Positions 50,452-62,355 are shown, numbered from the stretch's first letter. The stretch is DNA of 64,000 bases from Tetramitus jugosus (GCA_937625935.1 OW569379.1:124001-188000); one strand, 5' to 3'. A program made the numbers and translations. The notes: generated by a model not told the origin, from the letters alone.

Positions 50452-51615
50452 TTATCGGTCCATATGATTGCAAAACTCTGAAAGCATTTCATAATATTCA
50501 GCAGTGTACCTCCGTTTCTCAGTCTGTGGTTCCTTTGATCCCTTGGGCACAGGCTTCGTATAGATACTAAACTCTATGCTGCTGTAATCCTCTGATTCTG
50601 CTCCCTTGTCTTCCTGTGTCATCGATGGCAAATCCCCGACCTTGCACTGATAAATATGTCGAATGACATGTGTCTCAGGATTGTCCCTAATGATCATCAA
50701 CTCGACCAAACTCAACCCACAAGCTCTCATATCTCTCATCACCTGCTCATGGTCTCTCGACGGAAAAATAAAACAAAATTTTCCGCCATCGGGATTTAAT
50801 ATCATTCGAACACTCGAAAACAAATCGCTCAGTGTCATACTACAGTCGGAGACCAAATGTCGCGCGACTTTTCTCTTGTGTCCACCCTTGTTCAACATGG
50901 CTTCATGCGTATCTGGAGTCAGAGCTGAAATAAAATACGGCGGCGCACACGTAATGAGATTATACTTGTAAAAACCGTCATCCGTCTCAGTCGGAGAATT
51001 ATTTGCCGCCTCTGAGCTTAGCTGAGAGCTATATTGTTGAATGGGAATGTGATGAACGGTAATACGTTCTCTCCACTCTTCACTAAATTGTTGCAAATTG
51101 ATTTTGCACTGATGAATCGCATCCGAGTCCACATCAATCACATCCAAATGCATCTTCATCATATCACTATTGTTACTATTATTCTCTTGTCCAAGAGGAA
51201 AATAATGTTGGGCGAGCATCATTGAAATGAGTCCACTGCCACAACCAATATCAAGCAAACGATTAGGAATGACATTCAACTGTTTTTTTGTCATATTCTT
51301 TTTTTCTTCTTCATTTTCATTTTCATTGTTATTGTTATTGTTATTATTGGTGGTGGTGGTGGAAGAAGAAGATGATGATGATGATGATGGAGAAAAGAGA
51401 GAAGAGGCGTAACCACCGAGTAAGACACCATCAGTGCCCACTTTCATTGCACACAAGTTGTGATAAATGGTAAAGTGATTGAACACAAAGTAGTCCTTGT
51501 TTCGGCGAGATGATGATTTCTTTGGTTGATTTGGTTCTTGTTCAACTATTGTTGTTGTTGTTGTTGTTGAAGTGAGTGGAGTGATGTCATTGTCGTTTGT
51601 TTGTTGTTGTTGCAT
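50452..51615 (-). CDS. tRNA1(Val) A37 N6-methyltransferase-like (TrmN6/YfiC family)
   Basis: AMKVGTDGVLLG, LDIGCGSGLI, CAPPYF, VARH, YTAEYYEML. ATG at 51615. Confidence 0.85.
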   Translation of the reverse strand: MQQQQTNDNDITPLTSTTTTTTIVEQEPNQPKKSSSRRNKDYFVFNHFTIYHNLCAMKVGTDGVLLGGYASSLFSPSSSSSSSSSTTTTNNNNNNNNENENEEEKKNMTKKQLNVIPNRLLDIGCGSGLISMMLAQHYFPLGQENNSNNSDMMKMHLDVIDVDSDAIHQCKINLQQFSEEWRERITVHHIPIQQYSSQLSSEAANNSPTETDDGFYKYNLITCAPPYFISALTPDTHEAMLNKGGHKRKVARHLVSDCSMTLSDLFSSVRMILNPDGGKFCFIFPSRDHEQVMRDMRACGLSLVELMIIRDNPETHVIRHIYQCKVGDLPSMTQEDKGAESEDYSSIEFSIYTKPVPKGSKEPQTEKRRYTAEYYEMLSEFCNHMDR

Positions 51616-51681
51616 GTTTGTTGGTGGTTTACTTTTTTTCACATACCAAAATCAGTTTTGGGACTTTTGTGCGTGCAATTT

Positions 51682-51697
51682 GGGGGGGGTCACGAGA
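51682..51697 (+). repeat. Left terminal inverted repeat
   Basis: GGGGGGGGTCACGAGA; 14/16 match to the reverse complement of 56653-56668. Confidence 0.85.
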
Positions 51698-51949
51698 TGT
51701 GAATTACTGTGGTTTCTGCGTGAAGAGAAGTGAAGAAAGCAACATACTAGTAATTGTGATTGCATCAACAATAATTAATGGACCGATTGAATTCGCAGCA
51801 CGTAAAGGGTATATGTTACTGTCATTGATTAGTTGCGTGGTCGTACGTGTGGACCGTATCTTCGAATCTAGTCCATTTTCCCGTGAGGTTGTCGTGTTCA
51901 CAGCACTTGACGCTCGTCACGACAAGCGAAAAAACCAAAAACCACAACG

Positions 51950-54900
51950 ATGAGTGATGATGTGCCACAATACATATGTTCAAACCTTTTGCATCACAGT
52001 GACGCGAAGCAGTACTACAGTTTGAACAGAATGGTATGTTTGAAGTGTGAACAAGACCGACTGAAGACAGGAAAGAGCCATCAACCATATGGATTGAAGA
52101 AATATTGTGAGGAGTGCAAGAAGTATATATCTGCATGTAACTTTTCAAGACCTGATCGACACAAGTGCTTCAAGAAGCCAGCAGTTCTTGTTGATGAATC
52201 ATCCAGCATTCCACTTCAGTCAATGGATGACACCACACGACATGAGAACAAGTACGATTACTTGAAAGAATTTCTGCAGCATGTGAAGGATGAGGTATCA
52301 CAGCACCAATTTGTGTTGTGGTCTGGCTTCAAAACCAAGTACATAGATCTGATAACATCACCCATTTGGAATACAACTGACCTGAGAAATACTATAACGA
52401 AGAATACTCTACTAGGAGTTGACATTACATTTCTGCTGTATGACGGAATGTACTATGTGTGTCACAGAACAGTTTCTGCAGAATTTATCTCAGCTGTTGT
52501 CAAGTCTCTCGTAAATATGCCTGCAGTGGGCAGTGGAAGCGATCACAGTCACAACTGTAGTCACACTGATGTAGTACATGTAAAAGTTGATCAGAGTAAC
52601 AGCATAACTCAGAAGGAATGTCCTGGGTTCACACCATCTAAATTTGCCAAACAGTATTGCAGTGTACATAGCTGTTTGGTATTAATGACCGGAGTGATAG
52701 CTACTCAAATAAATAGCACAGATCAGTATAGATCTAAGTGGTGTAAGATGTTCGTGACTGGAAAGCAACAGACTTGTTCAATGTGCTCGAGTGCAAAGAA
52801 GACTCTTGATCAACGCGGTACAAGAGCTCAGAATGCAGTCGACACTGGAAGCATCATGGGACGAAATGCATACTCTACAAACACCACGGCACTGATGCTA
52901 GCTAAGGTTAATGCTTTACAATCAAGTTTGTATAGTGCTAATCGTAAGGTCAAAGAGTTGCAAGATGAGGTTGATCAATTATTTCATCTGAATGCAGATG
53001 GCAAAGATGTTGATCAAAAGAAGCAATTGTTTCTCAAGGTGTGTAAAGCACTACACCAAGCTGATGGATATCCATTCTTCTTCCAGCTGTATGAGAGTCA
53101 AATGGACAACTTTGTCAAGGAGACCCGGTTCCTCCACAGATATGATGATACAATTAAGCACTTCTGGAAACATTTTAGACATGTTGCTGGACCAAAGGCT
53201 ATTGATGTTCTCAGAGGAGTACAGAGTGAGAATGCAGGTTTGGAGTACAATATGTTCATTCCAAGTAATAGTACATTGGATAGAATAGAGGATATTGGAT
53301 CGTATGGAGCTCCTCCTCAACTGAGAGTTGACGAGATACACATTTTATTAGAAGATCACGTGAAACAGACTGGTTGCAAAGAATACATCATCAGCTTTGA
53401 TGGCATTATAGTTATACCTAGGTACAAATACTCTGAAGGTTTAGACAAGGTACTTGGAGGAGAGGTTGCTCTTACCCCAGAAGAATATGTATCGCGGTCA
53501 AAAGAAGATCTGGATGATGATCTTGGGAACGAAGTTATTCAGTTTTTGATTCACAGTATTGACGGAGATGTCACAATACGTGCAGGTCATTGGGTGAAGC
53601 CTGACAAGTCAAATGGTGTGAAGTTTATCACATCAAAACTCAAAACTCTTGTAGAGTTGTTCTATAAGAAGGATGTATGTGAGTTAATTGCATCCTGCAG
53701 TGATGGCGATTTATGTAACGATGCAGTGCAGAGTTATATGGAGAAGTATATGAGAGACAAGTATGGTACTCCGTGGTTTCACTTGTTTGACTTCAGCCAT
53801 CTACTGAAGGCTCTGAGAAATGCCCTGCTGAACAGAGTGCTGGAACCTGGTGGACACCAGATACATATGAATTTACTGATTGATCTGTGTAATAAGAGTC
53901 CTAGTGATGGAGTTTTAAGCTTTATCAAAGACAGTTGGTTGAATCCTCCAGACATCATGAAAATGCTTCCATGTTTAGAGATCACATCAGAGAGAGTGCA
54001 AACAGCACTTAAGAGCTTACCAGAAGATATGTACTCTGAGCAAGAACGCAGCTCAGCGCTCGAGCTATCACAATACTTGGGTCAAATCCGAAGCTTGTAT
54101 GATTGCTTTATGGATGTAGACATGCTTCAAGACAAAGCTCTTACACGATTGTATGGTAAATCCAAACCAAGTGAGACAGTCACAGAGGACAGTCTAATGA
54201 GTTATATATGTGGGTGGAATGCATCAGAAAAATCTGCTCAGTTTAAGCTGGCATCACAGACCAGTCGCCATGTTACCACTACTGTCAATAATTTGTACAA
54301 GCTTGTACAATATCTGAATGAGAGACAGGTATCATACTACCTAAAGAGATCGGCATTGTCAACGCTCGCAGTTGAGCTGACATTTTGTGTCACTCGTGGG
54401 ATGCAAGCGTATGTAACTGCTTGCGAATTTAGTACACTATCTGGTAGATCAGAGTGGGATCAACGTATAATTTGTACAGATCCAACAATTCGTCGATGGT
54501 CTTTACCATCAGATGTCCAACAACCATCCAAGTACTACAACGCTTGTATTATACACTATGATACCATGCCAGCTCTGAAACCAAAGAATGATTCCAAAGA
54601 GAAGAGACTGTTGCATTCCGACGATGTAATGAAGGACATGAGATTGAAACTTGCCTCACAGGGAGAGACTACAGGTCACAAGAAAACCAGATCACACTGC
54701 AACACTAGTCACAAGAAGCACTGGTTTCAGTGTGGACAGTGCAATCGACGACCTTATCATTATCCAACAGCTCTTGAAACTCACCTAGGGAAAGTACATA
54801 AGTTGTCTACAGAAGCAGCTGCAGCAGTAGTTAAAGACATGAAGGTCGCAATTATGAAAGAAATCATTGCAGAGCGATCTACTGAACGTAGACAGGCTGC

Positions 54901-56518
54901 TCAAAATGCAGGGATTAGAGAGCCTGCTATAGAGGATGGTGTCGTCACTGAATGGACAGATGAGCATGAGTTGAACTTATTAGACGCTCTAGTCAGAAGC
55001 CACGAAGAACCTACTGAAGAGAGCGATAAATCCATCAGTAATGCTGCAGGAGACAACATATTTCCCATCAGTGACGAGCTGTTAGACTATGTCAAGGACC
55101 TAGAAGACATATTCCAGTTTGTACAGATGGAGATTACTGGTGAGTTAAGTACTACAGATTCGTCCCAGACAGAATTCGCTTTGGATCAGACAAAGCCAGT
55201 GTTGGTATCTTTTGTAGATTGTGAAACAATCAACCTACAGAAATACCCTCACGGTGGTCCATGTGAGATTGCTGTACGAACGGAAGGTATGCCACCAGGT
55301 ACGATACTTTGTACTAGGTTGAATCCATTCCCATTAAGCACATCTTTCTGGAGTGATGACAGTATTTCGATACATGGTATTACACCAGAAGATGTAATTG
55401 GGCAGCCTTTGCTTGAGAAAGGTATTCAGGCCTTCTACAGATTAGTCACTTGTGACAGGAGATGTAGAGCCATCTGTGTTGCTTTCAACTCAGCATTCGA
55501 TGATTCCAGGATTACAAGTTGTAGTGAACTGGTACCAGAGTTTGATGAGTATGATGTTGTATGGGTGGATGCTAGGAAGCTTATTGGGGAAGAGTTTGTG
55601 TGTGATGATGAAGGTAGGATCATTGACAGGGTTGGCAAGCTTGCGGATATATTCAATCACCGACTAAAGCAGGTAGAACAGATAGATGAGTCAAAGATCC
55701 ATGGTGCTAGGTATGATACACATATGATGTACAGTCTGTTGGTACATAAGTACGGATCTGAAGAGAAGGTCAGAGAAGAAGTGATTAAACTTTCTCGTCA
55801 GAGGAAAGGTGTTGGATGTAACTGTACTGGTGGATGTGTATCATGCTCTTGTACTGTGGAAGGTTCTGCTGGCTGTACATTAGCCTGCGACTGCTTTGGA
55901 TGTGCTAACCCAATTCAACGTCGTGCTGCGTATGATCTTCTAGTGACGTTTGAAGATTTGACGGAAACAGCAATCAATAAGATGAAGAAGAATGAGCTGA
56001 AGATCATGCTGCATCACAGGAATTACGATATTCGTGGTACTAAGGACGATCTGAAATCTAGATTGTTGTCTGTTTTGAAAGGCAGTGGTGACTCAGTTCT
56101 GAAGTTTGGAAATAAGCAACCAGTGATTACAGATGATCAGGAATTGACCAGAGAGATGGTCTTGAAGATGTCTAAAGATGTACTGATTACTCAACTCTCG
56201 AAGAGATATAATGTTAGTGCGAACAAACATTCAACTGTTGGCGCTCTCATATATAAACTGTTGCAGGCAGCAAAGCTTGATCAAGAAGGAGATGAAGTGA
56301 TGACTGCGCCTAGGAAGAAGAAAAGAAACGCAAAGAGCAGCAAGCTGTCTACACAACCTTCTGTCTCTTCCAAGAAGAGAAAGTCTCCACCTGACAAAGA
56401 CTCTCAACAACCAACAAAGAAGAAGAAAGTTTCCACTAGTAAGAAACGTGATGCAGATGTATTAGACAGCTCTCAAGCATCTCCACAGAAACGAACTAAG
56501 AAGCATGATGCTTTATGA
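51950..56518 (+). CDS. P/THAP9-like DDE transposase fused to C2H2 finger, DEDDh 3'-5' exonuclease, CXC (tesmin/CRC-like) and SAP domains
   Basis: Transposase motifs ISFDG, CSDG, FDFSHLLKALRN (DxxH), DIMKM, LSTLAVELTF. Exonuclease motifs FVDCET, AFNSAFD, HGARYD. Also CNCTGGCVSCSC..CTLACDC..CAN and MKKNELKIML..GTKDDLKSRL. Confidence 0.85.
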   Translation: MSDDVPQYICSNLLHHSDAKQYYSLNRMVCLKCEQDRLKTGKSHQPYGLKKYCEECKKYISACNFSRPDRHKCFKKPAVLVDESSSIPLQSMDDTTRHENKYDYLKEFLQHVKDEVSQHQFVLWSGFKTKYIDLITSPIWNTTDLRNTITKNTLLGVDITFLLYDGMYYVCHRTVSAEFISAVVKSLVNMPAVGSGSDHSHNCSHTDVVHVKVDQSNSITQKECPGFTPSKFAKQYCSVHSCLVLMTGVIATQINSTDQYRSKWCKMFVTGKQQTCSMCSSAKKTLDQRGTRAQNAVDTGSIMGRNAYSTNTTALMLAKVNALQSSLYSANRKVKELQDEVDQLFHLNADGKDVDQKKQLFLKVCKALHQADGYPFFFQLYESQMDNFVKETRFLHRYDDTIKHFWKHFRHVAGPKAIDVLRGVQSENAGLEYNMFIPSNSTLDRIEDIGSYGAPPQLRVDEIHILLEDHVKQTGCKEYIISFDGIIVIPRYKYSEGLDKVLGGEVALTPEEYVSRSKEDLDDDLGNEVIQFLIHSIDGDVTIRAGHWVKPDKSNGVKFITSKLKTLVELFYKKDVCELIASCSDGDLCNDAVQSYMEKYMRDKYGTPWFHLFDFSHLLKALRNALLNRVLEPGGHQIHMNLLIDLCNKSPSDGVLSFIKDSWLNPPDIMKMLPCLEITSERVQTALKSLPEDMYSEQERSSALELSQYLGQIRSLYDCFMDVDMLQDKALTRLYGKSKPSETVTEDSLMSYICGWNASEKSAQFKLASQTSRHVTTTVNNLYKLVQYLNERQVSYYLKRSALSTLAVELTFCVTRGMQAYVTACEFSTLSGRSEWDQRIICTDPTIRRWSLPSDVQQPSKYYNACIIHYDTMPALKPKNDSKEKRLLHSDDVMKDMRLKLASQGETTGHKKTRSHCNTSHKKHWFQCGQCNRRPYHYPTALETHLGKVHKLSTEAAAAVVKDMKVAIMKEIIAERSTERRQAAQNAGIREPAIEDGVVTEWTDEHELNLLDALVRSHEEPTEESDKSISNAAGDNIFPISDELLDYVKDLEDIFQFVQMEITGELSTTDSSQTEFALDQTKPVLVSFVDCETINLQKYPHGGPCEIAVRTEGMPPGTILCTRLNPFPLSTSFWSDDSISIHGITPEDVIGQPLLEKGIQAFYRLVTCDRRCRAICVAFNSAFDDSRITSCSELVPEFDEYDVVWVDARKLIGEEFVCDDEGRIIDRVGKLADIFNHRLKQVEQIDESKIHGARYDTHMMYSLLVHKYGSEEKVREEVIKLSRQRKGVGCNCTGGCVSCSCTVEGSAGCTLACDCFGCANPIQRRAAYDLLVTFEDLTETAINKMKKNELKIMLHHRNYDIRGTKDDLKSRLLSVLKGSGDSVLKFGNKQPVITDDQELTREMVLKMSKDVLITQLSKRYNVSANKHSTVGALIYKLLQAAKLDQEGDEVMTAPRKKKRNAKSSKLSTQPSVSSKKRKSPPDKDSQQPTKKKKVSTSKKRDADVLDSSQASPQKRTKKHDAL

Positions 56519-56652
56519 TTAACAAGGTATTGATTATTCGAATCATGCAACAACATGAACCGCTCGCAACACACATATCATAACAATAACAGTAGCATAT
56601 GCTACACAGTCAGTTTCAAGTCATTTGCACAACTTTCCTCACTTCTCTATTG

Positions 56653-56670
56653 TCACATGACCCCCCCCTG
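56653..56670 (-). repeat. Right terminal inverted repeat (plus terminal TG)
   Basis: TCACATGACCCCCCCC-TG followed by GCAATTT. Confidence 0.85.
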
Positions 56671-56828
56671 GCAATTTGCAAGATGATGTTCGTTGAATGC
56701 TCGATTGGTATTGTGCACTCTTGGTCTTATACTTCTGGCAAGCTCAGATGAACATCAAGAAGTTCCAACAAAAGCTCTCAAAAAAAAATATCACAACAGT
56801 TCGCACTAACAAAATTCAAACCAGAACA

Positions 56829-57923
56829 ATGGCAGTGAAAGCCAGCAGAAAGTATAGCCAGACCGCTTTTGAAGAGCCATTACTTCTCAATATTTTTGAT
56901 TTGTTGCCTTGTGATCTACAATTGTACATTGTGACATACTTGGACCTTCAAGATTTGTTTTACATATCATTGAGTTGCCAACATGGTGCCTTCCTGGTGT
57001 TGAGTCCTGAGAATGATGGATATGTTTGGAAGTCCGTGGCTAATCACGTTGTGTTCAACAATAGCCACGAAGCTATTCAGATATTCAAGCAAGAATCGAA
57101 AGAACAGAAGGTCCATAACGAGAAGGAAGACAGGAAATTGTTTCAAGAGATGTCTCTGTTTGAGGGGGATAGTCACTCAACTCTGAATGCGGAGAGCAGT
57201 GGAATTACAGTTGAGCTTCGAGACAAGGATGAAACACTCACTGATGCTTCTTCACCAACCATGTGGAGAGAATTGGTTCGATCGAACTTGATCAGGTGGG
57301 ATCCAGATACAAGAACACCAGATACTGCCATACATATGCGCAACAGTAACAAGACAATATCTTGTGAGATGAGGGACAGGTGGAGCACTATACGAGCTGA
57401 TAGAAAACTTGAGATAGACAGGGTGCATTGTTGGGAGTACATATTCGATCATCATGACAATTTTGGAGATTACAACGCCTATAGAGTATTTGTTGGAATC
57501 GAGAGAAGTACCTATGCATTTACTGAAGTGGGATTCGACAAGATTATTGGTTTGAACAGTCAAGGAATTAGTTACAATGTTGGTGAACACGCGGTTCACA
57601 GAGATCATTCAGAACATCTCAATGACAGATCTATTCTACATGAAAAGAAATTTGTATTTGGCACAGGCGACACGATTGCCATCAAGCTGGATCTGAAAAG
57701 TTTGAGCAGTTCAAACACTGCTTCCATGTATCTCTTCAAGAACAATGAGTATTTCATGACCATCTCGGACATTCCCACACAAGATATCTTGTACTATCCT
57801 GCCATATCAGTCATTGGTTGTCATACGGTGTCCATTCGAATGAAGAACCCGTCTATTCTCCGTATAGATCGAGTAAAGTTGATAACGGACGATGAGGACT
57901 ATACAACGACACAACGACAGTGA
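56829..57923 (+). CDS. F-box + SPRY domain protein
   Basis: FDLLPCDLQLYIVTYLDLQDLFYISLSC; VFVGI..FGTGDTIAIKLD..LFKNNE..YYPAIS. Confidence 0.85.
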   Translation: MAVKASRKYSQTAFEEPLLLNIFDLLPCDLQLYIVTYLDLQDLFYISLSCQHGAFLVLSPENDGYVWKSVANHVVFNNSHEAIQIFKQESKEQKVHNEKEDRKLFQEMSLFEGDSHSTLNAESSGITVELRDKDETLTDASSPTMWRELVRSNLIRWDPDTRTPDTAIHMRNSNKTISCEMRDRWSTIRADRKLEIDRVHCWEYIFDHHDNFGDYNAYRVFVGIERSTYAFTEVGFDKIIGLNSQGISYNVGEHAVHRDHSEHLNDRSILHEKKFVFGTGDTIAIKLDLKSLSSSNTASMYLFKNNEYFMTISDIPTQDILYYPAISVIGCHTVSIRMKNPSILRIDRVKLITDDEDYTTTQRQ

Positions 57924-60214: not shown

Positions 60215-62355
60215 TTTCTTTTAGTTTCTCGGATCGTCCTTGTGACGCTCGGAGAGCGTCTCCTCTTTCCTGTTAGTAACGCTCGCAGAGCGTTACTACT
60301 GTTTGCAGTCCTTTGATTGCTGGTAGAGTCTGTGAAGCGTTGTGATGCAGCGACTCTTCACCCAGCACACAAAACTACGGGCCTTTCGATGCGCTACTTC
60401 TTGTTTCATCCCATTTTTCATCAGCGCATCTGCCACCTGGTCGACAGCGCCGTTCTCTAATCCCATCATTCCCATGAGGTACTCTCTGCTCGACTTCCTC
60501 GGCATGGGCCACATGAATCCGTTTCTGAACAGCACTTTGTCAAACCATAGGGAGATGGCGGACTCTCGATGTAATGGAAGTTTGAGCAACTTGTTGTAGA
60601 CTTCCAGGACGAGTCTTCTCCTGGCATCAATTGCGTACTGACACCTGACAAGGCAATGGAGGATTGTATCAGGTTCAGTACCGCATCTCGGGCATAGATT
60701 GGACTCGTCATCATCGTACAAATAGTTACATACCACTCTGGTATGCAACGTACCACTACGTACTTGAGCGTGGAACCATTCCAACCGACGATCAACAACA
60801 AACGGATTCTTGAGAAAGTCGAACTGATTCTTATGTTCCATCGCAGCGACCTGCAACCACCATTGCGGATTCCGACAGATGAACGCCTTACGTTCCTGGA
60901 ACAATTCCTTCAGATCTTCTTTTCCCCTCGCATACTTACCATTGAATCTGATGGTATGTATGAACCCCTTTGTTTGATGCAACTCCAAATTCATGCACTC
61001 TGGCATTGCCATCACCGTGAGGGCCACCTCTTGGTAGGTTTTAGGCCCAAACCCCTTGCCAACCTCGGTTTTTAGTGACTCGAAGCTCTTGATTCTTCCC
61101 TCATGAAGTAGTTGTTGTTTCTGATACAGTCCAGCCCTACTGAGCAGTCTGAGGGACCTAGCTGGCAAGTAATTAGATAATTTGCACCCTTCACAGCGGC
61201 TATGGGAGTCATCAGTGATGATGATTCCCTTCTCGTGCAGCCTCATTGCGCACCATTTCATGAAAGAGTGTTTGACTTCCGTAACTCTGTGGTCCGACTG
61301 GAAGATGTTCTCCGACCGGAACGTGTAGTGTTTCTTGATGTACTCAAGAGTGTCCATCCACAGAACGTTACCTTCTTGATCTCTCTTCCCTCTCATCATG
61401 GATTTCACAAAAAGTGCTGTGCGAGTAGCAACTGCTTCCCAGAAGTTGTCTAGACCAATGGATCCCCACTCGGGGCCGATGTATAGTAACTCCGTGGGAT
61501 ATCTCAACATAGCTGTTGAACCATGTTTGATAAGCCTCTTTCCAACCATATTCACATCATCCATCGATTTCATCGTCCATTTTGTGAATTCACTTGCGTA
61601 CAAAAAGATGGGGTGTACACATGCGTTCACGATACGTGCAACTTGCCTGGGACCCAGATTCAAGACTTTGAGACGTTCAATGACTCTTCTGGCTTTAACC
61701 TTTGCTTGAGCAATCTGCTGATCAGTCTTGCCTTGGAGATTGAGGAATAGTCCGAGTGCACGGAAGTGCACCTTTGGCCCTTTGGCAGGCACTCTGGAGT
61801 TAGCTACCATAATGTCGTGCTCTTCAATATCGTCTCCTGGCTGTCTGACAAAGAGTTCGAGTTTGTTTGGGTGCATCTGCATCCGCAACATCTCCAATAC
61901 CCCACTCATATCATTAGCAATGCGTTCTATATCTTCCTTGGATTCTGACACAATGTTGCAGTCATCAACATACGCAATGTTCCAGATCTTTTGAGAGAGC
62001 GCCTGGTAACCAATTGCTCTACGTTGGGACTGTTCGATGTACCAATACATATGTAGTGGGATACAACGAGTCCCCTTGTCTCGTGCCCTTGTTGATTTTG
62101 AAGGGTCTCGAGAGTTGTCCTGCCAAAACTTGTGCCTCATTGTTCGACACCATATCAGTGACTAACTTGGTGATGTTGTCTGGGTAGCCGAAGAAATCGT
62201 ATACTGCATGTATTGCGTTGTGTGGGACTGAGTCAAAAGCCTTCGAGATGTCTGTTAATAAAAGGTATAGTTGTCTCTGCCTCCTATTCGCGTCATCAAC
62301 AATTCCTCTAATTATTGACAACTTTTCCCTAATATCTCTCATGCGTCCACCTCCT
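60215..62355 (-). mobile_element. 5'-truncated L1/Tx1-like non-LTR retrotransposon (RT + CCHC knuckle), frameshifted
   Basis: RT motifs DISKAFDSV, KGTRQGDSL.P and AYVDD; zinc knuckle CPRC..HCLVRC. Frameshift/deletion near 62043 splits ORFs 62019-62342 and 60296-62140. No endonuclease or ORF1. Boundaries approximate. Confidence 0.88.

Follow-up and report, generated by a model that had tools for sequence, protein, structure and literature searches.

In the transposases of P elements a THAP domain is typical, the superfamily being defined by its catalytic core, and the handling of the 17-nt 3' tails of these elements is usually ascribed to host repair. P-element transposition involves a 17-nt staggered cut, and the internal binding sites are unequally distant from the two ends (PMC7776569). 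Kolobok, a sister superfamily of P with a C/DxxH signature, is defined by TTAA target duplications, 5'-RR...YY-3' termini and zinc fingers within the core (PMC9587614). It includes the KolobokD elements, reported from animals and described by Kojima and Bao in 2022, which encode a DEDDh/DnaQ nuclease reported as TREX/ERI1/exuperantia-like and have a CCHC finger that follows the first catalytic D and a zinc finger in the interval from the second D to the E (PMC9587614). Dada elements encode large transposases with zinc fingers, produce 6-7 bp duplications, have no terminal inverted repeats (TIRs) and target small-RNA genes; those of Laccaria and Ectocarpus, described by Kojima and Jurka in 2013, contain a DEDDy exonuclease placed after the second D and before the DxxH motif (PMC3706591). 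For both KolobokD and Dada it was proposed that the exonuclease trims the 3' ends of transposition intermediates (PMC9587614, PMC3706591). Here we describe a 4989-bp element of Tetramitus jugosus, a protist of soil and groundwater (positions 51682-56670), which combines a P-type transposase with a predicted DEDDh exonuclease in a single protein. It lies in a stretch of 64,000 nucleotides (GCA_937625935.1, OW569379.1:124001-188000; contig C36:124001-188000), which is referred to below as the window.

The element is very probably an autonomous cut-and-paste transposon of the P superfamily, belonging to a deep and diverse lineage whose transposase carries a C-terminal DEDDh 3'-5' exonuclease. A preliminary description made from the sequence had reported one uninterrupted open reading frame (ORF) of 1522 amino acids (aa) between TIRs, and both the single enclosed ORF and the inverted ends were found (Table 1). 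From position 51682 the left terminus reads G8-TCACGAGA, and its inverted counterpart on the right runs to 56670 and ends in ...CCCCCCCCTG; read as the complement, the right terminus is CA-G8-TCATGTGA. A 16-nt subterminal motif, AGAGAAGTGA(A/G)GAAAG, is present at both ends, at an unequal distance from the G run (34 nt on the left and 12 nt on the right), and its conserved part measures 13-16 nt; GAAGTGARGAAAG is the motif at the subterminal positions of the element. A CA precedes the G run at the other ends examined and is absent at the left end in the window. Throughout the genome assembly that was searched (26.35 Mb, 56 contigs), poly-G with GAAGTGARGAMAG directly behind it occurs at six distinct sites, all of which are element ends, and the reversed control gave no site in the 26-Mb genome. 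The right boundary is confirmed by a truncated copy on contig C18 (94-98% identical), the alignment of which ceases at 56666.

The target duplication flanking the element in the window is ambiguous, being 7 bp (GCAATTT) or, when the G that opens the run is included, 8 bp (GCAATTTG), because the base after the right copy is a G and the left end opens with the G run. An intact paralogue on contig C14, with a frame of 1536 aa and a protein 51% identical to that of the window, has CA-G9-AGC inverted repeats and a perfect 8-bp duplication, AGAAATCT; it shares the subterminal motif, and the unequal spacing recurs there, with about 33 nt (5' end) and 12 nt (3' end). A duplication of 7-8 bp, as expected of the P superfamily, is thereby seen on two informative copies. 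The 5'-CA...TG-3' ends and a target duplication of about 8 bp are shared with the P element of Drosophila, and the subterminal motifs resemble its internal binding sites in lying at unequal distances from the ends (PMC7776569). The short CA-poly(G) TIRs differ from the 31-bp TIRs of the P element.

Profile and Pfam searches and a predicted structure agree in identifying the core as that of a genuine P-element transposase, as had been proposed from the sequence. The catalytic residues that had been picked by eye, D484, D585, D614xxH617 and E809, pair in the profile alignment with D230 (FDE), D303 (SD), DtpHliKlvRN and E531 (vEhfF) of Drosophila P transposase, with which the core shares about 14-15% identity. 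Each residue named in the preliminary description was found at its given position. A profile search of 1.84 billion representatives recovered 140 proteins at an expect value (E) under 1e-3, and in an alignment of 31 core sequences D585, D614, H617, R623, N624 and E809 are invariant. When the 31-member profile was run against 177,635 PDB sequences, the sole family matched was Drosophila P transposase (6p5a, E 3.9e-14). Pfam TNP-like_RNaseH_N was found in 14 of the 31 core homologues (best E 5.6e-14), and all named structural neighbours in the ESM Atlas belong to clusters with TNP-like_RNaseH_N, TNP-like_GBD, TNP-like_RNaseH_C, THAP or Tnp_P_element.

For residues 220-1000, AlphaFold gave a model with a mean predicted local distance difference test score (pLDDT) of 84. 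Foldseek matched the core model to 6pe2/6p5a at E 1.8e-12 with a template-modelling (TM) score by target of 0.70-0.72, the next families (ISCth4, Transib and Hermes) coming behind with E near 1e-3 and TM no higher than 0.3. With VIA-align, residues 359-876 (model 140-657) superposed on chain residues 128-569 of 6p5a at Z 20.8, with a root-mean-square deviation of 3.4 A over 413 of 442 residues, covering the helix-turn-helix (HTH), the RNase H and the insertion domain. The second-best match had Z 9.2. Like Drosophila P transposase and THAP9 (6p5a, 6pe2), the modelled core has an HTH and a split RNase H fold with a helical insertion domain between beta5 and alpha4, and this insertion domain superposes on that of the P transposase structure. 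The DDE triad and the DxxH motif, a D(2)H after the second D, align residue for residue with the homologous core of the Drosophila protein, and in both a coiled coil, predicted in the case of T. jugosus, lies upstream of the core. A hAT identity, which had been considered for the CAG ends and the 8-bp duplication, was rejected, Hermes giving Z 8.1 or less as against 20.8 for P transposase. Within the insertion domain, an LCNKS motif (residues 646-653, nt 53885-53908) aligns with the LCNKS of Drosophila P transposase; within the family only L, C and K of this motif are invariant.

In comparison with the Drosophila protein, the transposase has about 650 extra residues at the C-terminus. They hold a plausible C2H2 finger and the DEDDh exonuclease, followed by a CXC-like Cys cluster, a borderline SAP motif and a tail rich in basic residues. 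Profile and fold comparisons indicate that the exonuclease domain is real, and its activity is predicted from them. All catalytic residues had been reported as present, and the Exo I (DxE), Exo II (D) and Exo III (Hx4D) motifs are indeed in place in a DnaQ fold, D1090/E1092, D1184 and H1251/D1256 being encoded within 55217-55717. Among 11 sequences sharing as little as 11-20% identity, no change occurs at D1090, E1092, T1093, H1251 or D1256, and at least 90% of the sequences have D1184. The exonuclease profile matched the exonucleases of PolC (2.5e-16) and DinG (1e-13) and RNase T (6e-11), as well as ExoX and the epsilon subunit. Pfam RNase_T was detected weakly in all five family members scanned and strongly in distant homologues, down to E 5.2e-16. 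When residues 1040-1450 were modelled, the model could be overlaid on epsilon, RNase T, ExoX and also a TREX1 homologue with TM by target of about 0.7. Comparison by domain with Drosophila P transposase and with DEDDh nucleases, which the preliminary description had proposed, gave the anticipated fold in both cases.

Membership of KolobokD instead of the P superfamily has some features in its favor. Kolobok is close to P, KolobokD is likewise a cut-and-paste DDE transposon of the hAT/P/Kolobok/MuDR/Dada group with a DEDDh 3'-5' exonuclease (PMC9587614), and Kolobok was compared here by its published description. We nevertheless regard this assignment as very unlikely. The duplications found here, AGAAATCT and GCAATTT(G), and the CA...TG ends differ from TTAA and RR...YY, which are seen neither in the window element nor in the C14 paralogue. 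In the 31-sequence alignment no Cys/His columns are conserved in the intervals that hold the KolobokD fingers. Sequence, Pfam and structure all indicate P/THAP9 specifically. The exonuclease is nearest to PolC, epsilon, RNase T and ExoX, whereas ERI1 and TREX2 were matched only at E 0.003-0.06, and its subtype appears to be different.

That the element belongs to the Dada superfamily has a negligible probability. It resembles Dada in being a large DDE transposase of about 1500 aa with a DxxH motif, Cys clusters on the N-terminal side of the core, a finger on its C-terminal side and a duplication that may be 7 bp long, and some Dada transposases also combine the core with a 3'-5' exonuclease in one polypeptide. 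Here, however, clear TIRs and an intergenic target, between two protein-coding genes, take the place of TIR-less ends and insertion into small-RNA genes. The exonuclease is of the DEDDh type and C-terminal, in contrast to the DEDDy domain inside the Dada core, and the D585-D614 gap in which that domain would be expected amounts to 28 residues. The core, moreover, matches P transposase at Z 20.8.

At the N-terminus the THAP domain of Drosophila P transposase is replaced by other Cys/His modules, in line with the earlier proposal of a different N-terminal zinc module: THAP (PF05485) gave no match in five family members at E up to 1, and none when segments from the N-terminus were searched to E 10. 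In the model, the second Cys cluster forms short strands that run into a helix (pLDDT 74-90); it is without Pfam match, and an ESM Atlas feature search with the N-terminal 350 residues gave no usable match. The predicted helix of residues 312-346 occupies the place of the P-element leucine zipper, judged by the domain order of P transposase (PMC7776569).

C-terminal of the core, the four ligands of the reported C2H2 finger are present and invariant; profile matches to C2H2 fingers are weak (E 0.0012 to 6), and the assignment is plausible. Of the CXC and SAP domains of the preliminary description, the Cys pattern and the SAP motifs are visible in the translation, with weak statistical support. 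The first SAP is borderline, scoring 23.5 bits against a cut-off of 23.9, that is 0.4 bit short (PF02037, segment E 4.3e-5), and is modelled as helix-extension-helix; the CXC cluster and the second SAP are recognizable at the level of pattern. For the CXC-like cluster, Pfam TCR and MSL2-CXC reached E 0.3-2.6 in two relatives only, the segment from the window gave no match, and the model has a pLDDT under 50. In the second SAP-like stretch the only Pfam match is a weak one to an unrelated family.

Table 1. Features of the element, its ends and the encoded protein in the window (assignments of protein domains are predictions).
Feature	Position	Strand	Remarks
Left target-site duplication copy, GCAATTT	51675..51681	.	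Identical heptamer directly after right end
5' element end: G8 run, 34-nt spacer, subterminal motif AGAGAAGTGAAGAAAG at 51724-51739	51682..51739	+	
Single uninterrupted transposase ORF, 1522 aa, ATG start	51950..56518	+	Longest frame in region
N-terminal Cys/His cluster, residues 10-73	51977..52168	+	Without Pfam family or THAP match
Second Cys cluster, C224, C237, C265, C276, C279	52619..52786	+	All invariant in family
Long helix, probably coiled coil, residues 312-346 (model helix 93-127)	52883..52987	+	AlphaFold model
P transposase core, residues 359-876: HTH, split RNase H with alpha-helical insertion domain	53024..54577	+	
Core catalytic residues	D484 (nt 53399), D585 (53702), D614xxH617 (53789), E809 (54374)	+	Aligned to P transposase
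C2H2-type zinc finger, C928, C931, H945, H950	54731..54799	+	Four residues invariant
DEDDh (DnaQ/RNase T-type) 3'-5' exonuclease, residues 1085-1270	55202..55759	+	D1090, E1092, D1184, H1251, D1256
Nine-cysteine CXC-like cluster, residues 1290-1321	55817..55912	+	Nine invariant Cys, CXC-like spacing
SAP motif, residues 1342-1373	55973..56068	+	Helices, pLDDT 72-83
Second helix-extension-helix, SAP-like, residues 1398-1440	56141..56269	+	Model helices, pLDDT 83-91
Lys/Arg-rich tail with runs like a nuclear localization signal	56303..56503	+	Read from translation
3' element end: CA, G8, 12-nt spacer, subterminal motif AGAGAAGTGAGGAAAG at 56648-56633	56633..56670	-	
Right target-site duplication copy, GCAATTT	56671..56677	.	

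Homologues and profiles were needed for these assignments. A Pfam scan of the single protein gave SAP and RNase_T below threshold only, and phmmer of the single protein against the PDB gave nothing useful beyond a weak match to the SAP structure 1zrj. In a word-indexed search of 5.8 billion proteins, the protein and the 31-sequence profile alike found four close relatives, one 98% and three 61-62% identical over the core; the latter three are from other organisms and share 53%, 53% and 51% identity with the window protein over the full length. More distant kin were reached by exhaustive HMMER profile search.

Among the 43 long homologues scanned with Pfam, 17 have RNase_T C-terminal to the P-like core. 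A hidden Markov model (HMM) of the exonuclease built here was positive in 33 of 66 fetched proteins with substantial core coverage, most of the others being truncated contigs. When HMM and Pfam are taken together, about 20 of the 22 C-terminally complete proteins in a quick maximum-likelihood tree carry the exonuclease; one protein, P0081, was missed by the HMM and is positive by Pfam. The exonuclease-bearing proteins are spread through a group of 39 members, which is separated from P0130 and P0132 by a branch with 97% support in the Shimodaira-Hasegawa-like approximate likelihood ratio test. P0132 is a canonical THAP-HTH-RNaseH_N-GBD-RNaseH_C protein. These comparisons indicate that the exonuclease is common in a large branch separate from canonical P/THAP9, and that it is probably ancestral there.

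Homologues such as P0078, P0057, P0024, P0032 and P0060, from public protein collections, resemble the window protein in having TNP-like_RNaseH_N followed by a C-terminal RNase_T. P0060 originates from a transcriptome of Soliformovum irregulare (Amoebozoa); the annotation of the other fusion homologues does not go beyond hypothetical or 'DNA polymerase III epsilon subunit-like'. Distant homologues differ in size, with 800-1200 aa or 1812 aa, and in having no CXC/SAP tail, and their cores are 19-27% identical to that of the window protein. Across cores that are about 20% identical the catalytic residues are kept in both domains, which points to selection on both. The contigs of two distant homologues (L032 and L034) showed no convincing TIRs. 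In the preliminary description the architecture was not recognized as a described family. Our literature search, which did not take in Repbase Reports and many subscription journals and is thus not proof, brought up no publication in which a P-type transposase carries a DEDDh domain. Analogues are nevertheless published in KolobokD and Dada, and the fusion of P core and exonuclease is not peculiar to this element, being typical of a large clade. As far as the literature search reached, the THAP-less, exonuclease-bearing branch of P is widespread and apparently undescribed.

Besides the window element and the C14 paralogue, truncated or decayed copies are present on contigs C18, C26, C19, C38, C43, C50 and C12, with a solo end on C42. 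A third, more distant P-like lineage is represented by an open frame of 842 aa (C41:162239-164042, minus strand; core-profile E 4.9e-135). The C14 paralogue (C14:16457-21317) and the truncated or decayed copies C18:518245-520483 and C26:8218-10665 lie within about 20 kb of contig ends, while the window copy is situated in a gene-dense interior, with divergent genes on either side (50452-51642, minus strand; 56697-57923, plus strand).

The element also occurs at 99-100% identity in metagenomes from groundwater, soil, hot-spring and hydrocarbon samples. Compared with the window, the metagenome contigs show two other left junctions with different flanks and the CA kept (flank-CA-G7/8, run X3), one further left junction in which ...CTTTTTTA is followed directly by the G run, and one other right junction. 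In a contig of a diverged strain the left flank passes straight into the diverged right flank of the window site, and this contig is probably an empty allele of the site. A 5239-bp metagenome contig, L035, contains a copy, 99.7% identical, whose 4563 coding bases differ from those of the window element at 15 places. Its left flank equals C49:58692-58851 at 100%, where the T. jugosus assembly has no element. The site C49:58851/58852 of this genome (G000; L037 about 1660) is thus empty here and occupied elsewhere (L035, run X7) by a 99.7% copy, which is direct evidence of recent insertion polymorphism. As the two flanks of L035 are not adjacent in the T. jugosus genome, this contig was probably joined across copies in a chimeric assembly, and it was used for the left junction only and not for the length of the duplication. 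The ratio of nonsynonymous to synonymous differences (pN/pS) between the window copy and L035 is 0.73, a value which, coming from 15 differences, is uninformative.

The window element is a true, recently mobile transposon and not a domesticated gene. A domesticated host gene derived from a P element, comparable to THAP9, would agree with the long intact ORF, the conservation over the full length in several organisms and the low copy number in the genome, and is nonetheless hardly credible: domestication is excluded by the TIRs, the target duplication, the multiple copies and the insertion polymorphism. A second intact subfamily has TIRs and a duplication of its own, other copies have decayed, and 99.7% copies stand at other sites in other strains, with a site that is occupied elsewhere being empty in this genome. 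Because such copies are found at different sites in environmental strains, the window copy looks young and intact, which makes it a realistic candidate for excision and integration assays; it is possibly of use as a genetic tool for amoeboid protists.

Several minor observations concern these copies. The left end varies among near-identical copies, with CA kept in two, none in the window copy and A or nothing in the copy at the C49 site. The 98%-identical protein P0001, encoded on L035, has a 12-residue tandem duplication (YKLVQYLNERQV twice) at about residue 788 in the insertion domain, the frame remaining open. Contig L036, from a related organism, contains the 3' end only, and L020 begins inside the G run. 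In run X3 some 'joints' with skips of 150-796 nt, their short sides measuring 25-30 nt, resemble artefacts of the assembly graph and were left uninterpreted.

Some points weigh against the interpretation as a P-superfamily transposon with exonuclease. The transposase has no THAP domain, and Pfam TNP-like_GBD is weak (E 0.067 and 0.0022, in single members), which bears on GTP binding. For the target duplication there are two complete copies, and in one of these its length may be 7 or 8 bp; L035 was dropped as a third complete copy for duplication length, its flanks being unrelated. The separation of the element from Kolobok and Dada relies on published descriptions of these superfamilies. The tree comes from a quick search, has several long branches and is unrooted, and for this reason it is read solely for the commonness of the exonuclease in a branch distinct from P/THAP9. 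Transposase and exonuclease activities are both predicted from sequence and models, and pieces of the ORF in assemblies of two soil metatranscriptomes are compatible with transcription but no proof of it. Finally, the substrate of the exonuclease is uncertain, as the transposon's own 3'-OH ends might suffer damage from a 3'-5' exonuclease located beside them.

A mechanism can be proposed on the model of the P element. The N-terminal Cys/His modules would bind the subterminal motifs, and the coiled coil would pair two protomers. The DDE site would make P-type staggered cuts and then join the 3'-OH ends to the target 8 bp apart. The tethered exonuclease would trim the 3' single-stranded tails of the staggered cut, most plausibly those of the donor flanks, which would enable repair of the break. 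Additional DNA or chromatin binding and nuclear import may come from the C2H2 finger, the CXC-like and SAP-like modules and the basic tail. That the exonuclease processes ends is an inference, drawn from what is established for the P element.

The transposon may be correctly identified while its exonuclease acts on RNA, for instance in an ERI1-like manner by degrading silencing small RNAs, or has another role away from DNA ends. DEDDh matches include RNases (RNase T, ERI1), and for the element there would seem to be a risk in having a 3'-5' DNA exonuclease close to its reactive 3'-OH ends. We consider such a role improbable. The best matches are proofreading and repair exonucleases that act on DNA (PolC, epsilon, ExoX and DinG), ERI1 being much weaker, and the exonuclease stays fused to the transposase over a very deep divergence. 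In related superfamilies 3'-5' DNA exonucleases are independently present and have been read as end processors (PMC3706591, PMC9587614).

The loss of CA or C at the left end in two independent insertions may reflect nibbling of the 3' end before integration; descent from a variant master copy would account for it just as simply. A wider reading, which we put forward tentatively and think somewhat less probable than its opposite, is that of an ancient, protist-wide P branch in which 3'-end processing is built into the transposase. The exonuclease would resect the long 3' tails of the staggered cut and occasionally nibble the element's own 3' ends, which could explain the loss of C or CA in the two insertions. 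With KolobokD and Dada, three superfamilies would then have recruited a 3'-5' exonuclease independently, suggesting a shared mechanistic need.

A natural P lineage with a fused 3'-5' exonuclease would offer a handle on the fate of the 3' tails of the staggered cut, and adds, beside KolobokD and Dada, a third case of exonuclease capture in the hAT/P/Kolobok/MuDR/Dada group. The lineage further indicates that P-type elements can be without THAP entirely, which is of importance for annotation pipelines keyed to this domain.

The local setting of the element is eukaryotic gene-dense DNA with a GC content of about 41%. Neighboring genes in the window encode a kinesin, a PEP-utilising enzyme, a CH and dual-specificity phosphatase protein and a DUF2828 protein. 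Another ORF of the window (60296-62140, minus strand) has a weak match to a reverse transcriptase (RVT_1, E 1.2e-4).

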